This document shows positions 41,766 through 48,333 of a stretch of DNA of 64,000 bases, piece after piece (position 1 is the stretch's first letter; each line of letters begins with the position of its first letter). This stretch comes from Anthoceros angustus (Eukaryota; Plantae; Anthocerotophyta): positions 682,001 to 746,000 of the forward strand of contig MU008177.1 of assembly GCA_010909165.1 (NCBI GenBank), written 5' to 3'. Below the pieces are notes generated by a model that saw nothing but the letters and a program-made list of their open reading frames with translations, did no database searches and had not been told where the DNA came from. The translations under genes were made by a program, and so were the position numbers.

Positions 41766-44765
41766 TTACTGGTTGATGCGCAGCTTTCTTGCGTGCGCCA
41801 TGATGGCAGCAGCTGCAGACAATGGCTTCTTGCTGGATGTTTCCGACTCTTGGACAGGTTGCTGGTCACTAGACTCTGCTGGAGTCGTTGCATCCTTGAT
41901 CGGTTCAGGCTCGTCAACAAGTCTCTCTAGACTCATTAGCTGCTCCAAAGGAGCCACCTGTAACAGAAAGCACAACAACAACACGAGGAATTTTATTTCT
42001 GAACCTCATCACAAGCCAAGGACGATGCTCCTGCATGCAGCAACCAACCTGGTTGAACCCATCAGGCCAGGCGATGGACACAGCGTAGTTGCCCATGGGT
42101 CTAATGCTCTCTGGTTCGATATCTTCAGGAACATCAGTAAACTTCAGTCGTTGCTCACCGGTCCATTCGTCCTGTTCAAGGGAACCAGTGATGCAAATCA
42201 ATGCCACCATCCTACAACACCTGATACAGGTCATGGCACTAAGGCATCACAGAACTTACAACACTCTGGGCTGATCTGTCATTTCTTCGTACAGTAGCAG
42301 GGTGCAGAAAAAACTCCTCTTGGCTGCCAGGCACTCGAACTCTGAGTGCTCTGATGCTCTTGTCATAAGTAACCGCCGTTGCAACTGTAGAGGATGAAGT
42401 GTGGGTTCAGCAGTGCCCGAACGTGGAACCAGAATGCACGCATCCATGAAATCCAGGTCCTTTACCTTGCTGACGGAGCTTGGCACATTGTTGTACTACG
42501 CAGACCCCGATGTTGGAAAAAGATCTGGCAACCTCTCCGAGAGGATCGGCAACAACTTCCGGGTTGCCACTGTCACCTGAGGCTGATAACTGACCGAAAC
42601 AGCAGACTAGAACTTACATGAAGCCCAGGGCATACATATGAGAGTGCAAGAACTTGTCTCTAACCATAAGCGTGGAGAAATAGTACCTCTGGCCTTATGG
42701 GGAGTTCAAATAAGTTTGGAATCCCAAACTGCTGCACCACCTGCTTAAAAAGCGAGAAATCTGAAATTGTCAGAGCGTAGAGCAGGTGTATGCCAGCGAG
42801 TATCCCAGCAGTTTTCACTCACCTGTGCACCTGAACCTTTGCCAAAAGGGTAGTACCGTTTTCCATCGCCATCAAAGTAACACATGTTTTCAACCACTGC
42901 AATACATGGCACCTGCAAGCCGATACACAAATCGCTCAAGGGAAAATTCATGGCTCAACAATCATTCAGGACACAGTCAAAGGAAGGGAAGGAAGGAGAG
43001 GAAAGGAAGGACGGAAGGAAGAAGAAAACACCTTAAGTTTTGAGAACATCCTCACTCCTTTTGCTACGTCTATAAATGCCAGCTTCTGTGGGGTCGTAAC
43101 AATGACAGCAGCTGTCAGTGGTACCACCTGGTAGGCAGGAAAGCATTACACCTGTGAGACTTCAGTGTCAGTACAACAGTGCGATCAGTACCAGACTGTC
43201 ATTGAAGAAGAACCTGACATAAGGTAAGCTGTATATCTCCTGTCCCTGGGGGCATGTCAACAATCAAGTAGTCCAGTTCACCCCTGCAGTGACAGGTGAT
43301 ACCTCACTCAGAGAGCAACAATGGCATGCACCAGGCTTGCTAACGTAGCTCGATGACAGACATTACCAGTCGGACGTGGTGAGCAGTTGGTTCACTACTC
43401 CGGATACCATAGGTCCTCTCATGATGGCACTGCCTTGCCCAGCATAACCGAAGGACACCAGCTTCACCCCAAGGTACTCAGTCGGATATATAGCTCTGGT
43501 CTCAGCATCCTGCAACACCAATAGTGCTTGAAAAAATCTACACCGTGAAAAAGGATTCTGAAGAAAGAGAGAAAACCTTGACAAGGGCAAAGTATTGACA
43601 TAACCTCACCATTTGTAGCACACGAATGTCAGGTGACACCATGGTCGGAAGACTGGGACCATACACATCAGCATCGAAGATTCCCACTCTTGCTCCCATA
43701 CCAGCCAACGCGTATGCCAAGTTCACTGCGACAGTGGACTTCCCGACTCCTCCCTGTCAAGGTCATAAGGTTGTCAGTCACCTTTTGCACAATTCCTTCC
43801 ACAGCTACCAATTCCGTTAAAGCCATACACGGCAAACGGAGAAGCCAGACCTTGCAGCTTGAAACAGCCACGATGTTAGACACGCCTTGGAGACCCTTGG
43901 GGACGTCTTCTGGAACAATTGGCTTAGGTGGTTGCGCACTCATTGTCACCTTGACGTCCCTGACCCAAGAGATTGCCCTCACATTCTCTAATGCCTGTTT
44001 CTCGAACTGTCCAACCCATACCACAACAAACGCATTATGTTTCACGCCAAGGGGCCAAGTGCTTCAGCGACAAAGGTTTGCATAACTACCATATCCTTCA
44101 CAGGACAGGCAGGAGTCGTTAGCTCCAGGCGAAAGGAGACCTGAATAACCAAAAACCTGTCAGAAACTTGAGCTGGGCACCCACAACAACCACAAGACTC
44201 TCCCAACATTCATAGACCACTATACCTTGCCATTGCTCTCATCAGCAGCCAGATCCTTCACAAAGCCACATGTCACAATGTCCGTGCCAAAATCAGGATC
44301 AATGATCCTAGACAAGGCTTGAAGCACATCATCGGTAGCAGTCCTTGGTGGGTCTGCTGCCAGAGGAGCTGCAAAGATAAAAATCCATCAAGAACCCAAT
44401 TCCCGGCGCTATCCACCCATACAATGCAACCATTTTCCATCCCCTAGAGCAACCTGCACTGGCAGTCGCTTGGCAGAATATTCTGCCCCTCCTCGGACTG
44501 GAAGCGGAATTCACCGTCCTCCCCAGTTCAAAATGCAAACTCTGCCCGTGCAAGGAGGTCACATTATCCATAACCACTCTGCCAATCCGTGGCTTTCTGC
44601 AGCCCCTTGTCCTGCCTGGAAATTCGCATTCTGGTTACAGAGGTTCAAGGCTCAAGCTCAGAGCAGATTTCAACCCGAAAATGCAGGCAGCAGGTGGGAC
44701 ATACCAAAGCAGGACCAGGAAACAGCTACAGCGCTGGAAGCAGACGCCATCGAGAGCTCGGCCAT
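41766..44765 (-). CDS. HCF101: HCF101, plastid Fe-S cluster scaffold (Mrp/NBP35 P-loop NTPase), multi-exon; alternative start at 44798
   Basis: [22 protein letters not shown]; [11 protein letters not shown]; VAVSSCK|[38 protein letters not shown]; [17 protein letters not shown]; [15 protein letters not shown]; [19 protein letters not shown]. Confidence 0.96.
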
Positions 44766-45103
44766 GGCCGCCGTGGCAGAACAGGCGACGGGGCGCATGG
44801 CCAGCGAGTGCTCTGCACACTCAGTAGAGCAAGGAGTGAAAGCAGCCGGCCTAAAAGCTCCCGTACCAAGGCCTTCCTATACGTTTGGATATTGGGAAGG
44901 TTTAGAGTAGGTGGTTGTTACATTTATCTGCTCCTATTTGTTTCTGGTAAAAATCCGCTCCAATTTTCGTGAACCACAAAATCCACTTCAACCAGTCGTT
45001 GACTCGTTTCTCGTGAACCGGATTGATTCAGCTTCCGGGTGTGAACTCACCAGGAGTTTGAACCGGACCAGCGAGTTCGAACCGGAAGCGTAGTTAGGCG
45101 GCG

Positions 45104-45112
45104 TTTAGGGTT
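45104..45112 (+). promoter_or_regulatory. Telobox (TTTAGGGTT) upstream of RPL29
   Basis: tttagggtt followed by a tataaat TATA-like word at about 45129. Confidence 0.6.
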
Positions 45113-45212
45113 CCGGTCTGGGTATGACTATAAATAAAGGGGGAGCTGTCGATTTTACTTCTCCCGATCATTGTCCGTCTCGTACGCGGAGGAGCTCCGA
45201 GCGGCGGCAGGG

Positions 45213-45407
45213 ATGGCCAAATCGAAGAATCACACGGCGCACAACCAGTCGTACAAGGCGCATAGGAACGGCATCAAGAAGCCGAAGAAGCAGAAATACA
45301 TCTCGCGCAAGGGGATGGACCCCAAGTTTTTGAGGAATCAGAGATACGCCAAGAAGCACAACCGGACAGCTGATGCCGGTTCCACTGGCGAGGCCGAGGA
45401 GGAGTGA
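45213..45407 (+). CDS. RPL29: 60S ribosomal protein L29 (eL29)
   Basis: [25 protein letters not shown]...[20 protein letters not shown]. Confidence 0.97.
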
Positions 45408-45595
45408 ATCTGATGCAGGTGTGCGAGGGCTCTCCCTCAGTGGGGTAGCTCCCACGTCTGTTCTCTTGCTGTTCTGGCGTCTTTTTCAAAGGTTTGGCCT
45501 TGATGGTAGAGGTTTAGGTTTATGGTCTGCTGTTCGCTCCCTGGAGGCTAGTGCCGTTGATGCCCCTGTGTCTTGTTTGTTATGGTTGGTAGCTC

Positions 45596-45678
45596 TGCAC
45601 TATGAGGATATCATAACTGTGTGGTTGAGAGCTTTCAGCTCGCTGATGCTACCATACCTCCTACTCATTCTGAGTGCA
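45596..45678 (+). ncRNA. C/D-box snoRNA; predicted guide for an Am in 25S rRNA
   Basis: Terminal stem tgcac/gtgca; C box ATGAGGA at 45602; D box CTGA at 45670. The 12 nt cctcctactcat upstream of D are complementary to ATGAGTAGGAGG, recalled as conserved plant LSU rRNA. Confidence 0.75.
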
Positions 45679-45727
45679 TTATTTAGGTCAACGTCTTTTG
45701 TATCTTTCGTAAGGTCGCTGTGTAGCG

Positions 45728-45800
45728 AGGCATATGAGGAAACTAAATTATGGGTAATTTGCGACTGATCCGTGATGTCGAATTGATAGAACTGATGCCT
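45728..45800 (+). ncRNA. C/D-box snoRNA of the U16/snR87 type (18S Am guide), copy 1
   Basis: Stem aggca/tgcct; C box ATGAGGA at 45734; guide gggtaatttgcg (complement of 18S CGCAAATTACCC) then D' CTGA at 45765; C' GTGATGT; D box CTGA at 45792. Confidence 0.85.
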
Positions 45801-45906
45801 TGCTACAGTAAAGCTCACTCTTGTTTGAAAGATGTCTACTGATGGGTCAGATAGGTTAGGGTTTAGTGTCGGCGGACACCTATCGGTCGCACCAAGGACT
45901 AGGAAA

Positions 45907-45985
45907 AGGCAGTTGATGAGAAAATCCTTAACGGGTAATTTGTGACTGATCATCTGTGATGTCCAACCTTGGAGAGCTGATGCCT
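45907..45985 (+). ncRNA. C/D-box snoRNA of the U16/snR87 type, copy 2, possibly with a second LSU guide
   Basis: Stem aggca/tgcct; C box TTGATGA at 45913; guide gggtaatttgtg then D' CTGA at 45946; C' GTGATGT; accttggaga before D box CTGA at 45977. Confidence 0.85.
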
Positions 45986-46557
45986 GCTCCGATTGTCCTT
46001 CAAGCCTAGTAGAATATTACCTAGGCCATAGATTTCGTCTTTCGCGAAAGTCTTCAGACCCACGGAGTATTGTCTTAGTATTGTCTTGAACTCACCAGTT
46101 CGTGTTTCGTTTGGTTCAGCTCCAAGTTGCGATCCTCAGACTGGCTCTGTCGGAAGTCATTTTGGGCCCTCGAAGCGCCTTGTCGGTTCTTGGGTTATGG
46201 AAGGAGCTTCTAGCGCTGGGCTGCTGCGAAGGGTCCGATGGAAGATTCCAGCTGGAGAAGTTGTAACATTGTAGGAGGGACTTGAGACGAACGCCATTAG
46301 GAGTTTTGTTGTGCCGACGAGTGTTAACACTCATTTATTGAGAATTGAGTCGCAAAATCGGTTGTCCACGCGGATAGTAACTATCCCCGGACGTCTTAGT
46401 GTAGCTACTGTTGTGGCCTTCCTTTCAATCCTGATAGGGTTTCGTATGTGAAAAGGCCGTCACAATTTCTTAGTACAGTAAATGATATCACCTTCAGCCA
46501 AGAAGGGCGTCTGCTCCACATCAGGGTCATGGAGAAGCGAAGAATGCCAAGACAAAA

Positions 46558-48333
46558 TCAGAGGATTCGTCGGATCTTCAAGTAGCTGAACATAGCTATG
46601 AAGAGAGCGAAGCCGCCAAATACGATGCCAGATGTCGTGATCCAGAAAGCCAGAACATGCTCCTCCAAATACGACCTGAGGTTCATACCAAAAATGCCTG
46701 CGACGAGAGCTCCCAAGGCAGAACAGAAGGTGCCCACCTGCAGCAGCAGCTCCAGACGGCTTACCTCGAGTCTCCTTGAGCTCAAATTAACTGAGATGGA
46801 GTCCTCCATCTCCCTTGCAGAATCAAGCAACTTCTGGGCCTGACCATGACATGAATCGCACCGCTGGAGGTAGAACTCCAGAAGCATCTCGATCTCTTCT
46901 TCCTTGTCTTCCACAGCCTGTTTGTCTAAAATGGCATCGCATTCTATCTGGCCACTGTCTCGCCGAAAGCTGCATTTCATACCCATGATAGAGATGCGGT
47001 GAATTTCCTCCTGGTGCTCCAGGAGTTCAAGTAACATCTGCTGCAAGGACCCTGCCTTCGAGCTGAGCTCCACCAGTGCTTGCTTGCTCAGCCGCAGTTC
47101 CTCTAGCACATCAGCTGTGTATCGTGTTGGTAGCACGGCCAGAAGAGACTTCACTCGGGGTTCAACCTCCTGGAGCATGTTCTCGAGTCGTTGGGTCCTG
47201 GAAACCAGGGCAGCCTCCACCACTTCCAGCTCGAAGGGCATGCTAGCACCACTTCCATCTGCTAACACTCTAGGATATAAAGCTTCCAGAAATGTTCGAG
47301 CTCCGACACTATGCTGATCAAACACCAAAACGTTTTCAGGGGTTGCAATTGCCCTCAAAGACCCCAAGTTTAGCAATATTGCTCTATCACGAACTAGGAT
47401 GCCCGGCAAGGAGGTGGTCGACCACAAGGAGGGGTCAATGCGCCTCATGTCTCTCAGCCTCAGACCGCTGCTTCTCAGAAGCTGTCGCCTGCTCACAGTT
47501 CGTTGCTCAACCCTCCGCCCTGCAGTCACCTCAAGCACCTCGTACACCGGCTCCTTGGCTGCTATGGCTATAGATTCAGCACAAAAAGTGGAGGCAGAAC
47601 CAAAGATGGACCCCTCGCTTCTCGAGCTTTCAGCGTCCCATCCATCCTCTGACAGGCCATCTCCGTCATCACTCTTCTGCTCACCTTCGCTAGTGCCCAA
47701 GAACTCCCCATCCACAACCCATTGCTCAAAGGGCTGCTCCAGTGCCTTGTCTGGATATGTTCCCAGATTCTCAACTCGTTGTCTGAGTGCTCCGTTCAAT
47801 TCTCCCTCACGCGCTCCCCTAGAATAGACTTGCACATGGGAATCAGACTTACTGGGACCTGATATCCTATCGCCCGGTTGCTGCTGCTGCACCACTGTTG
47901 ACCCACTCAAGAGAGGCTCTGCCTCACCACCATCTCCAGACTCTCCACCTCTTCTGCTACCAGCAGCCACCACACGGGGCTTTCTGTAACCGGTGCCATA
48001 GGACTGATCCTCCCCAGCAAGGAAAGCGGACCAAGCTCCTGACAAGGTCAAGCACTTCCCCAGCACCTTCACCCTCTCCCTGCACAGAAGCAAGGCACAC
48101 ACTGCAGAAATCTCACACGAGCTCCACCCAGCACACCGCTTGTGAGCGTGGCACGTCTTCTGTAACATATCCCTATTCCCGCCAGCGAAACCCCTTGACA
48201 AACCATCGCAACCGGCCTGTGTAATGCCACACAGGCTTGAATCCGCTGCCTCAAAGCTGGCTGCCTGAACGCGAACTGGAGCCAAGGCAAACGACCTGGG
48301 CCTGACAGCGCACATTGCAGGACTCCAAGCCAT
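46558..48333 (-). CDS. MRS2-11: Plastid magnesium transporter MRS2-11/MGT10 (CorA family), intronless
   Basis: EPVYEVLEV; SRRQLLRSSGLRLRDMRRIDPSLW; MPFELEVVEAAL; NLSSRRLEVSRLELLLQVGTFC...GIFGMNLRSYLEEH (GMN motif). Confidence 0.95.
   Translation of the reverse strand: MAWSPAMCAVRPRSFALAPVRVQAASFEAADSSLCGITQAGCDGLSRGFAGGNRDMLQKTCHAHKRCAGWSSCEISAVCALLLCRERVKVLGKCLTLSGAWSAFLAGEDQSYGTGYRKPRVVAAGSRRGGESGDGGEAEPLLSGSTVVQQQQPGDRISGPSKSDSHVQVYSRGAREGELNGALRQRVENLGTYPDKALEQPFEQWVVDGEFLGTSEGEQKSDDGDGLSEDGWDAESSRSEGSIFGSASTFCAESIAIAAKEPVYEVLEVTAGRRVEQRTVSRRQLLRSSGLRLRDMRRIDPSLWSTTSLPGILVRDRAILLNLGSLRAIATPENVLVFDQHSVGARTFLEALYPRVLADGSGASMPFELEVVEAALVSRTQRLENMLQEVEPRVKSLLAVLPTRYTADVLEELRLSKQALVELSSKAGSLQQMLLELLEHQEEIHRISIMGMKCSFRRDSGQIECDAILDKQAVEDKEEEIEMLLEFYLQRCDSCHGQAQKLLDSAREMEDSISVNLSSRRLEVSRLELLLQVGTFCSALGALVAGIFGMNLRSYLEEHVLAFWITTSGIVFGGFALFIAMFSYLKIRRIL

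Follow-up and report, generated by a model that had tools for sequence, protein, structure and literature searches.

The original description of intronic snoRNA gene clusters in rice is said to be that of Liang et al. in 2002, and Chen et al. reportedly described such clusters in Chlamydomonas in 2008. In rice, 31 intronic snoRNA loci are on record, 15 of them hosted by ribosomal protein genes that have telo boxes in their promoters (PMC3022908; PMC8351944), such boxes being typical of the promoters of plant ribosomal protein and snoRNA genes (PMC3022908). As for the guides that matter here, Arabidopsis 25S Am1377 is assigned to AtsnoR7-1 and AtsnoR7-2, with no counterpart listed for human or yeast (PMC8583080), 18S Am440 (equivalent to human Am484) to AtU16 and AtsnoR15 (PMC8053127 Table 1; PMC8583080) and 25S Cm1860 to AtsnoR15 and AtU55 (PMC8583080). 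Animal snoRNA hosts of the GAS5 type, with introns after the stop, are targeted by NMD, according to the account of Lykke-Andersen et al. 2014 as cited in PMC4417159. A full-text literature search combining snoRNA with hornwort or bryophyte found no paper focused on hornwort or bryophyte snoRNAs.

Our analysis of a 64-kb stretch of hornwort DNA (the window, meaning the whole stretch analysed) confirms, as far as can be read from sequence, that positions 45596-45985 hold three box C/D snoRNAs. This identity is supported by Rfam, by pairing between guides and predicted targets beyond what shuffles achieve and by conservation in a diverged locus, paralogous or orthologous to the one described here. 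The reading we favour, at a rough probability of 0.85, sees these snoRNAs as a polycistronic cluster in a single 3'UTR intron of the hornwort RPL29 gene, 11 nt after its stop codon, and the interpretation offered in an initial annotation of this DNA is largely supported.

Every stem, C box and D box claimed for the three units was found in the sequence. snoRNA 1 (45596..45678, plus strand) is closed by the terminal stem TGCAC/GTGCA and carries C box ATGAGGA at 45602-45608, D guide CCTCCTACTCAT at 45657-45668 and D box CTGA at 45670-45673. snoRNA 2 (45725..45803, plus strand) has the stem AGGCA/TGCCT, extendable to 12 bp, with C box ATGAGGA (45734-45740), D' guide GGGTAATTTGCG (45752-45763), D' box (45765-45768), C' box TGATGT (45773-45778) and D box (45792-45795). 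The same stem, AGGCA/TGCCT, encloses snoRNA 3 (45904..45988, plus strand), in which C box TTGATGA (45913-45919), D' guide GGGTAATTTGTG (45933-45944), D' box (45946-45949), C' box (45957-45962) and D box (45977-45980) are joined by a second (D) guide, ACCTTGGAGA at 45966-45975, that the initial annotation had missed. All three units combine a terminal stem of 5-6 bp with a CUGA D box; unit 3 has UGAUGA, and units 1 and 2 share the variant C box AUGAGGA (G instead of U at position 5).

At gathering thresholds, Rfam reports two RNA genes and no others across the 64 kb of the window, and both are snoZ101 (RF00358): unit 3 (45904-45988) with 55.0 bits and unit 2 (45725-45803) with 45.9 bits, the gathering score being 44 and the E-values for the whole window 8e-08 and 1.7e-05. 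The Rfam check suggested earlier thus bears out units 2 and 3 and not unit 1 (45593-45680), which under relaxed settings scores 32.4 bits as snoZ162 and 27.0 bits as snoZ105, both under gathering (45). The D guide and D box of unit 1, ACCUCCUACUCAUUCUGA, are letter for letter those of the snoZ105 (RF00145) consensus. Unit 1 would thus act like snoR7/Z105 at the 25S site; with scores below gathering, its membership of that family is not established. The 17-nt patterns of guide plus box occur twice and once in the window and not at all in 100 shuffles. Minimum free energy folding of the units gave no strong signal (z from -2.9 to +0.1), as is expected for C/D snoRNAs.

Complementarity to rRNA was tested on metagenome rDNA contigs, mostly from green algae and some from protists (34 loci found by a green-type LSU pattern scan, about 10 of them also with the 18S site), the tie to land plants being made via the Arabidopsis maps only. 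On these green-lineage rDNAs, the D guide of unit 1 forms 12 Watson-Crick pairs from position 2 with LSU AUGAGUAGGAGG and the D' guide of unit 2 forms 13 with 18S GCGCAAAUUACCC(A), lengths that none of 500 shuffles reached in either case. The D' guide of unit 3 makes 12 pairs, one of them G-U, with the identical 18S site, and its D guide 10 pairs with LSU UCUCCAAGGU (5 of 500 shuffled guides were as long). For the D guide of unit 2, the same rDNAs gave no target above chance (8 bp; 81 of 500 shuffles as long). The Watson-Crick runs begin at position 2 upstream of D or D'. None of the rDNA loci scanned matched a 13-nt pattern lengthened by one A at its 5' end (AATGAGTAGGAGG), hence position 1 next to the D box is taken as unpaired and the 12-nt duplex of the initial annotation as the correct one.

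In the 18S, guide position 5 faces the first A of AAAUUACCC, in line with the initial annotation, which had two guides complementary to 18S and the first A of GCAAA selected by the D+5 rule. Because this A lies 28 and 33 nt upstream of the equivalents of A468 and C473, we equate it with Arabidopsis Am440; yeast snR87 presumably serves the same site. Naming it the U16 target was right insofar as Am440 is the site of AtU16 and AtsnoR15, units 2 and 3 being of the snoR15/Z101 type rather than plain U16. The LSU target sequence named in the initial annotation does exist in green-lineage LSU rRNA, and its target A, located 82 nt upstream of the A1459 (U24) equivalent, corresponds to 25S Am1377, the AtsnoR7 site (PMC8583080). 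On this account we dropped an assignment of unit 1 to the snR72/snoR72Y site (25S A885), which would put the target some 975 nt upstream of the C1860 site, against roughly 490 nt observed. The LSU target of unit 3 is the first C of CCAAGG, followed 32 nt downstream by a U where Um1892 is expected, and in this sequence context matches 25S Cm1860. So guides with at least 10 paired nucleotides place the fifth of these on three positions methylated in Arabidopsis (25S A1377, 18S A440 and 25S C1860). From the site assignments, AtsnoR15 is a known double guide for exactly the two sites of unit 3 (PMC8583080), which fits the snoZ101 consensus with both elements; unit 3 has both guides of that family (18S A440 and 25S C1860), whereas unit 2 is left with the 18S guide.

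In the architecture of unit 1, the D and D' CTGA boxes of the initial annotation, which hold for units 2 and 3 and for the D box of unit 1, fail at one position: the CTGA at 45643 reads TTGA in a related locus (L001, see below), overlaps a conserved TGATGC and probably is not the D' box. This conserved UGAUGC is best read as the C' box, and a conserved UGGUUGA upstream of it probably contains a degenerate D' box. UGGU pairs with ACCA directly after the C' box, and one position of this internal helix is altered on both sides between the window and L001 (G-U vs U-A). Sequence upstream of UGGUUGA is not conserved among copies and showed no rRNA complement in the pairing scan of green-lineage rDNA, which argues for unit 1 being a single-guide snoRNA. 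Upstream of either D' candidate there was no complement to the C473 region, as would be needed for an 18S Cm473 guide.

The host gene encodes eL29 (RPL29; 64 aa; Pfam Ribosomal_L29e, E 1.1e-24) in a CDS without intron at 45213..45407 on the plus strand, with TGA (45405-45407) as its stop codon. The protein shares 77-86% identity with named plant eL29s, for example those of Marchantia, Picea and Physcomitrium, and an exact-sequence look-up of it gave no match. A related species' mRNA contig spans 45199-45415 uninterrupted, so the CDS is unbroken. In the promoter region (45104..45136, plus strand) we read by eye two telo-box-like elements of putative function, TTTAGGGTT (45104-45112) and TATAAATA (45129-45136). 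Sequence and transcript contigs place an 11-nt stub of 3'UTR, ending in CAG, at the end of exon 1 (45408..45418, plus strand), and the donor CAG/GTGTGC is present at 45418/45419, 11 nt after the RPL29 stop, just as had been annotated. It opens a spliceosomal GT..AG intron of 701 nt (45419..46119, plus strand) with acceptor TTGGTTCAG/CT, beyond which exon 2 (46120..46560, plus strand, with a provisional 3' end) continues the 3'UTR.

Evidence for this intron comes from contigs of four public runs aligned to 44300-47300 of the window. These are Logan contigs whose RNA status is only guessed, spliced joints arguing for RNA. Run X1 is from the same species and matches the window exactly; one of its contigs joins 45415 to 46117, which as GT..AG (cut +3, skip 701) gives a splice from 45418 to 46120, and two related organisms (B and D; runs X2 and X7) have the identical junction followed by a slightly diverged exon 2. 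The prediction that an intron starting at 45419 hosts the cluster is thereby borne out. X1 has spliced joints in the adjoining minus-strand gene and no depth at all over the promoter region of RPL29, which argues that the run behaves as a transcriptome and not as DNA carry-over. An unspliced X1 contig (45389-46006, depth 16) runs from exon 1 through all three snoRNAs, which indicates that RPL29 transcription reads into the cluster. It stops 18 nt past the last snoRNA, and the rest of the 3' part of the intron has about zero depth; this hints at snoRNP-protected intermediates, contigs as such giving no proof of RNA ends or levels. With all three units inside 45419-46119, the locus is an intronic cluster in the sense of a transcribed host with at least two snoRNAs in a single spliceosomal intron. 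At 45889, in the spacer that precedes snoRNA 3, X2 and X7 carry a 9-nt insertion, CACCAAGGA, that is a tandem duplication of the preceding letters.

On either side of RPL29 lie genes on the minus strand. Convergent with it is an intronless ORF of 591 aa for an MRS2-like/CorA Mg2+ transporter (46558-48333). One transcript contig, X1 contig 6, continues from the RPL29 splice junction through 46117-47300 and thus into the MRS2-like ORF, so the 3' ends of the two genes probably overlap. Upstream, the gene at 44300-44845 has ORF pieces resembling Mrp/HCF101-type Fe-S ATPases and short introns at 44369-44453 and 44615-44703, which read CT..AC on the plus strand and are spliced in transcript contigs of three species. 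An FeS_assembly_P gene is also found near the RPL29 gene of L001, on the opposite side compared with the window.

Among the eL29 sequences of the protein collection, the nearest (P0001, 84% identity) is encoded on L001, a 33-kb Logan contig with a diverged, hornwort-like RPL29 locus in which a GTAAGT donor follows 37 nt after the stop. Downstream of that stop, in the same order as in the window, come a Z105-like unit with 40.5 bits (under gathering, 45) and two snoZ101 units with 58.4 and 52.2 bits. The CDS of the window is 83% identical to that of L001, and units 1, 2 and 3 reach 81, 74 and 75% (shuffles give 60% for unit 1), while spacers and intron flanks do no better than shuffles. The 25S guide is retained at both loci by the second Z101 copy, and the first has lost it or carries a degraded one; compared for orthology, the Z101 copies of the two loci show 67-75% identity in all pairings. 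A short CTGATG-containing similarity between spacer 2 of the window and spacer 1 of L001 (MAFFT) does not exceed shuffles and was rejected as a fourth unit.

Hornworts have at least three RPL29 gene types (paralogues aligning to 45213-45366 and 45637-45679 of the window; runs X1, X2, X6 and X7). On one contig of organism C, the second type is followed some 585 nt further downstream by a unit-1-like snoRNA, which differs in its 5' half and keeps the UGGUUGAGAG element. By comparison, the RPL29 loci of Marchantia (liverwort), Ceratodon (moss) and Diphasiastrum (lycophyte), taken with 3 kb of flank on each side, contained no snoRNA match and no guide motifs. From L001 and the paralogue on the one hand and the liverwort, moss and lycophyte loci on the other, the linkage of RPL29 and cluster seems long-standing among hornworts and lacking in the other lineages that were sampled. 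JGI contigs L002-L005 and L047-L049, with eL29 86-94% identical, belong to other organisms and have no downstream snoRNA. We also observed a U1 snRNA gene (L044:4701-4859, 119 bits) some 0.9 kb downstream of RPL29 in Ceratodon purpureus, and a JGI contig that joins a fragment of eukaryotic LSU rRNA to an RPL29 gene (L047:1-368) and is probably a chimeric assembly.

Could the snoRNAs be made without their host? A polycistronic snoRNA gene that has a promoter to itself, is transcribed independently and merely overlaps the RPL29 3'UTR intron would render read-through from RPL29 irrelevant to snoRNA production. Such independent clusters are a common organisation in plants and the majority in Arabidopsis (PMC8351944). 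Moreover, the intron contains a canonical telo box at 45857-45864 (TAGGGTTT, reading AAACCCTA on the opposite strand), 45 nt upstream of unit 3, where it could mark an internal promoter, given that telo boxes precede many plant snoRNA clusters (PMC3022908). This element, however, is missing at the corresponding place in L001, and we rejected it as a conserved internal promoter. Further, unit 1 begins just 177 nt after the donor, with no TATA-like element noticed by eye before it, the RNA contig is unbroken from exon 1 into the cluster, tying the two together, and at least two diverged loci retain the linkage to RPL29, as does a third paralogue in part. To our minds, an autonomous promoter therefore seems improbable, and we continue to favour origin from the host transcript.

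Slightly less probable still is a scenario in which one or more units are decaying snoRNA pseudogenes carried along passively, with unit 2 as the main candidate and unit 1 as the next. It would account for the D guide of unit 2 pairing no better than chance, for the sub-threshold Rfam scores of unit 1, for the variant C boxes of both and for the redundancy of units 2 and 3 at 18S A440. Decay sits poorly, though, with the comparison to L001, in which unit 2 has kept its boxes, terminal stem and 18S guide, and unit 1 its entire 3' half, while the spacers have been randomised; even the AUGAGGA C box of unit 1 is kept there, and the snoZ162 consensus has the identical G. That there is no RNA gene at all and short box motifs happen to coincide in a UTR is already contradicted at the sequence level and, to us, negligible: C and D boxes are indeed short and frequent, but the Rfam E-values for the whole window, a zero expectation for the guide-plus-box patterns in shuffles and the conservation of the units in L001 all speak against chance.

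For the intron-hosted cluster, the evidence best supports a route in which the snoRNAs are transcribed along with RPL29 and then released from its intron. Starting at the RPL29 promoter, RNA polymerase II would make a single pre-mRNA of gene and cluster, from which splicing would yield the RPL29 mRNA; nucleases would cut back the intron, or the precursor before splicing, until three snoRNPs are left, shielded by the C/D core proteins and fibrillarin. Plant intronic snoRNAs can reportedly be processed independently of splicing, a finding attributed to Leader et al. in 1999, and such processing may conceivably apply here too. snoRNA 1 is predicted to direct 2'-O-methylation of 25S A1377 (Arabidopsis numbering), snoRNAs 2 and 3 that of 18S A440, and snoRNA 3 in addition that of 25S C1860. 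We infer snoRNP assembly, the processing route and methylation in the hornwort, as well as escape from NMD; coupled production of RPL29 and guides would follow from co-transcription.

As regards that escape, EJC-dependent NMD needs roughly 50 nt between stop and junction, and the distance here is 11 nt (37 nt in L001). With an exon junction so close to the stop, the RPL29 mRNA should evade the pathway. An Arabidopsis reporter was not made NMD-sensitive by a 3'UTR intron located 19 nt past the stop (PMC4417159), and by analogy with this case the hornwort mRNA may likewise be spared. The stop-proximal junction hence offers a natural test case for the distance rule of plant EJC-dependent NMD. Going further, we consider it possible, if rather doubtful, that hornworts kept a dedicated partnership through duplication and speciation, in which RPL29 genes would hold a snoR7 and snoR15 cluster in an intron within about 40 nt of the stop, guides would be delivered by a highly expressed mRNA without NMD, a splice-or-retain switch would set the ratio of eL29 to guides, and snoRNA genes in this early-diverging lineage of land plants would be organised mainly as intron-hosted clusters, not as independent polycistrons.

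What the locus contributes is three snoRNA genes and one 3'UTR intron that ORF-based gene models miss, together with three conserved rRNA methylation sites predicted for a hornwort, one of which, 25S Am1377, is without listed human or yeast equivalent (PMC8583080). Current understanding of snoRNA biology is unchanged by it. Intronic snoRNA clusters in plant ribosomal protein genes are already known, and what is distinctive here is only the stop-proximal position in the 3'UTR and the conserved linkage to RPL29. Ribosomal-protein-hosted intronic clusters as known in rice also occur in hornworts, where their linkage to RPL29 appears old and lineage-specific.

Among the known systems, AtsnoR15 and rice Z101 (RF00358) come closest to units 2 and 3, which share with them the D' guide GGGUAAUUUGYG to 18S Am440 (human Am484), in unit 3 also the D guide CCUUGGAGA to 25S Cm1860 (human Cm2804), and which match in box order and length with scores above Rfam gathering. 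The two units overlap in predicted function with AtU16 or human SNORD16 and with AtU55. Different from AtsnoR15 and Z101, the hornwort has two tandem copies in a 3'UTR intron cluster, the first of them with an AUGAGGA C box and, owing to its lost 25S guide, probably acting like a U16-type single guide. Unit 1 resembles AtsnoR7 and rice Z105 (RF00145) in a D guide and D box identical to the consensus and in its predicted target, 25S Am1377. It departs from AtsnoR7 in having no 18S Cm473 guide, in scoring 27 bits, below Rfam gathering (40.5 in L001), and in a 5' half made up of the internal helix (UGGU/ACCA) and a small hairpin between the degenerate D' box and the C' box UGAUGC. With the rice intronic clusters, the locus shares the grouping of several snoRNAs in one spliceosomal intron of a protein-coding host; unlike these, the hornwort intron is confined to the 3'UTR and starts 11 nt past the stop codon (37 nt in L001). 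Animal hosts of the GAS5 type are alike in that a snoRNA is released from an intron after the reading frame. In what the citing source conveys of them, their junction is far enough from the stop to trigger NMD and each intron holds one snoRNA, whereas the hornwort junction is 11-37 nt from the stop and the host is a functional ribosomal protein mRNA.
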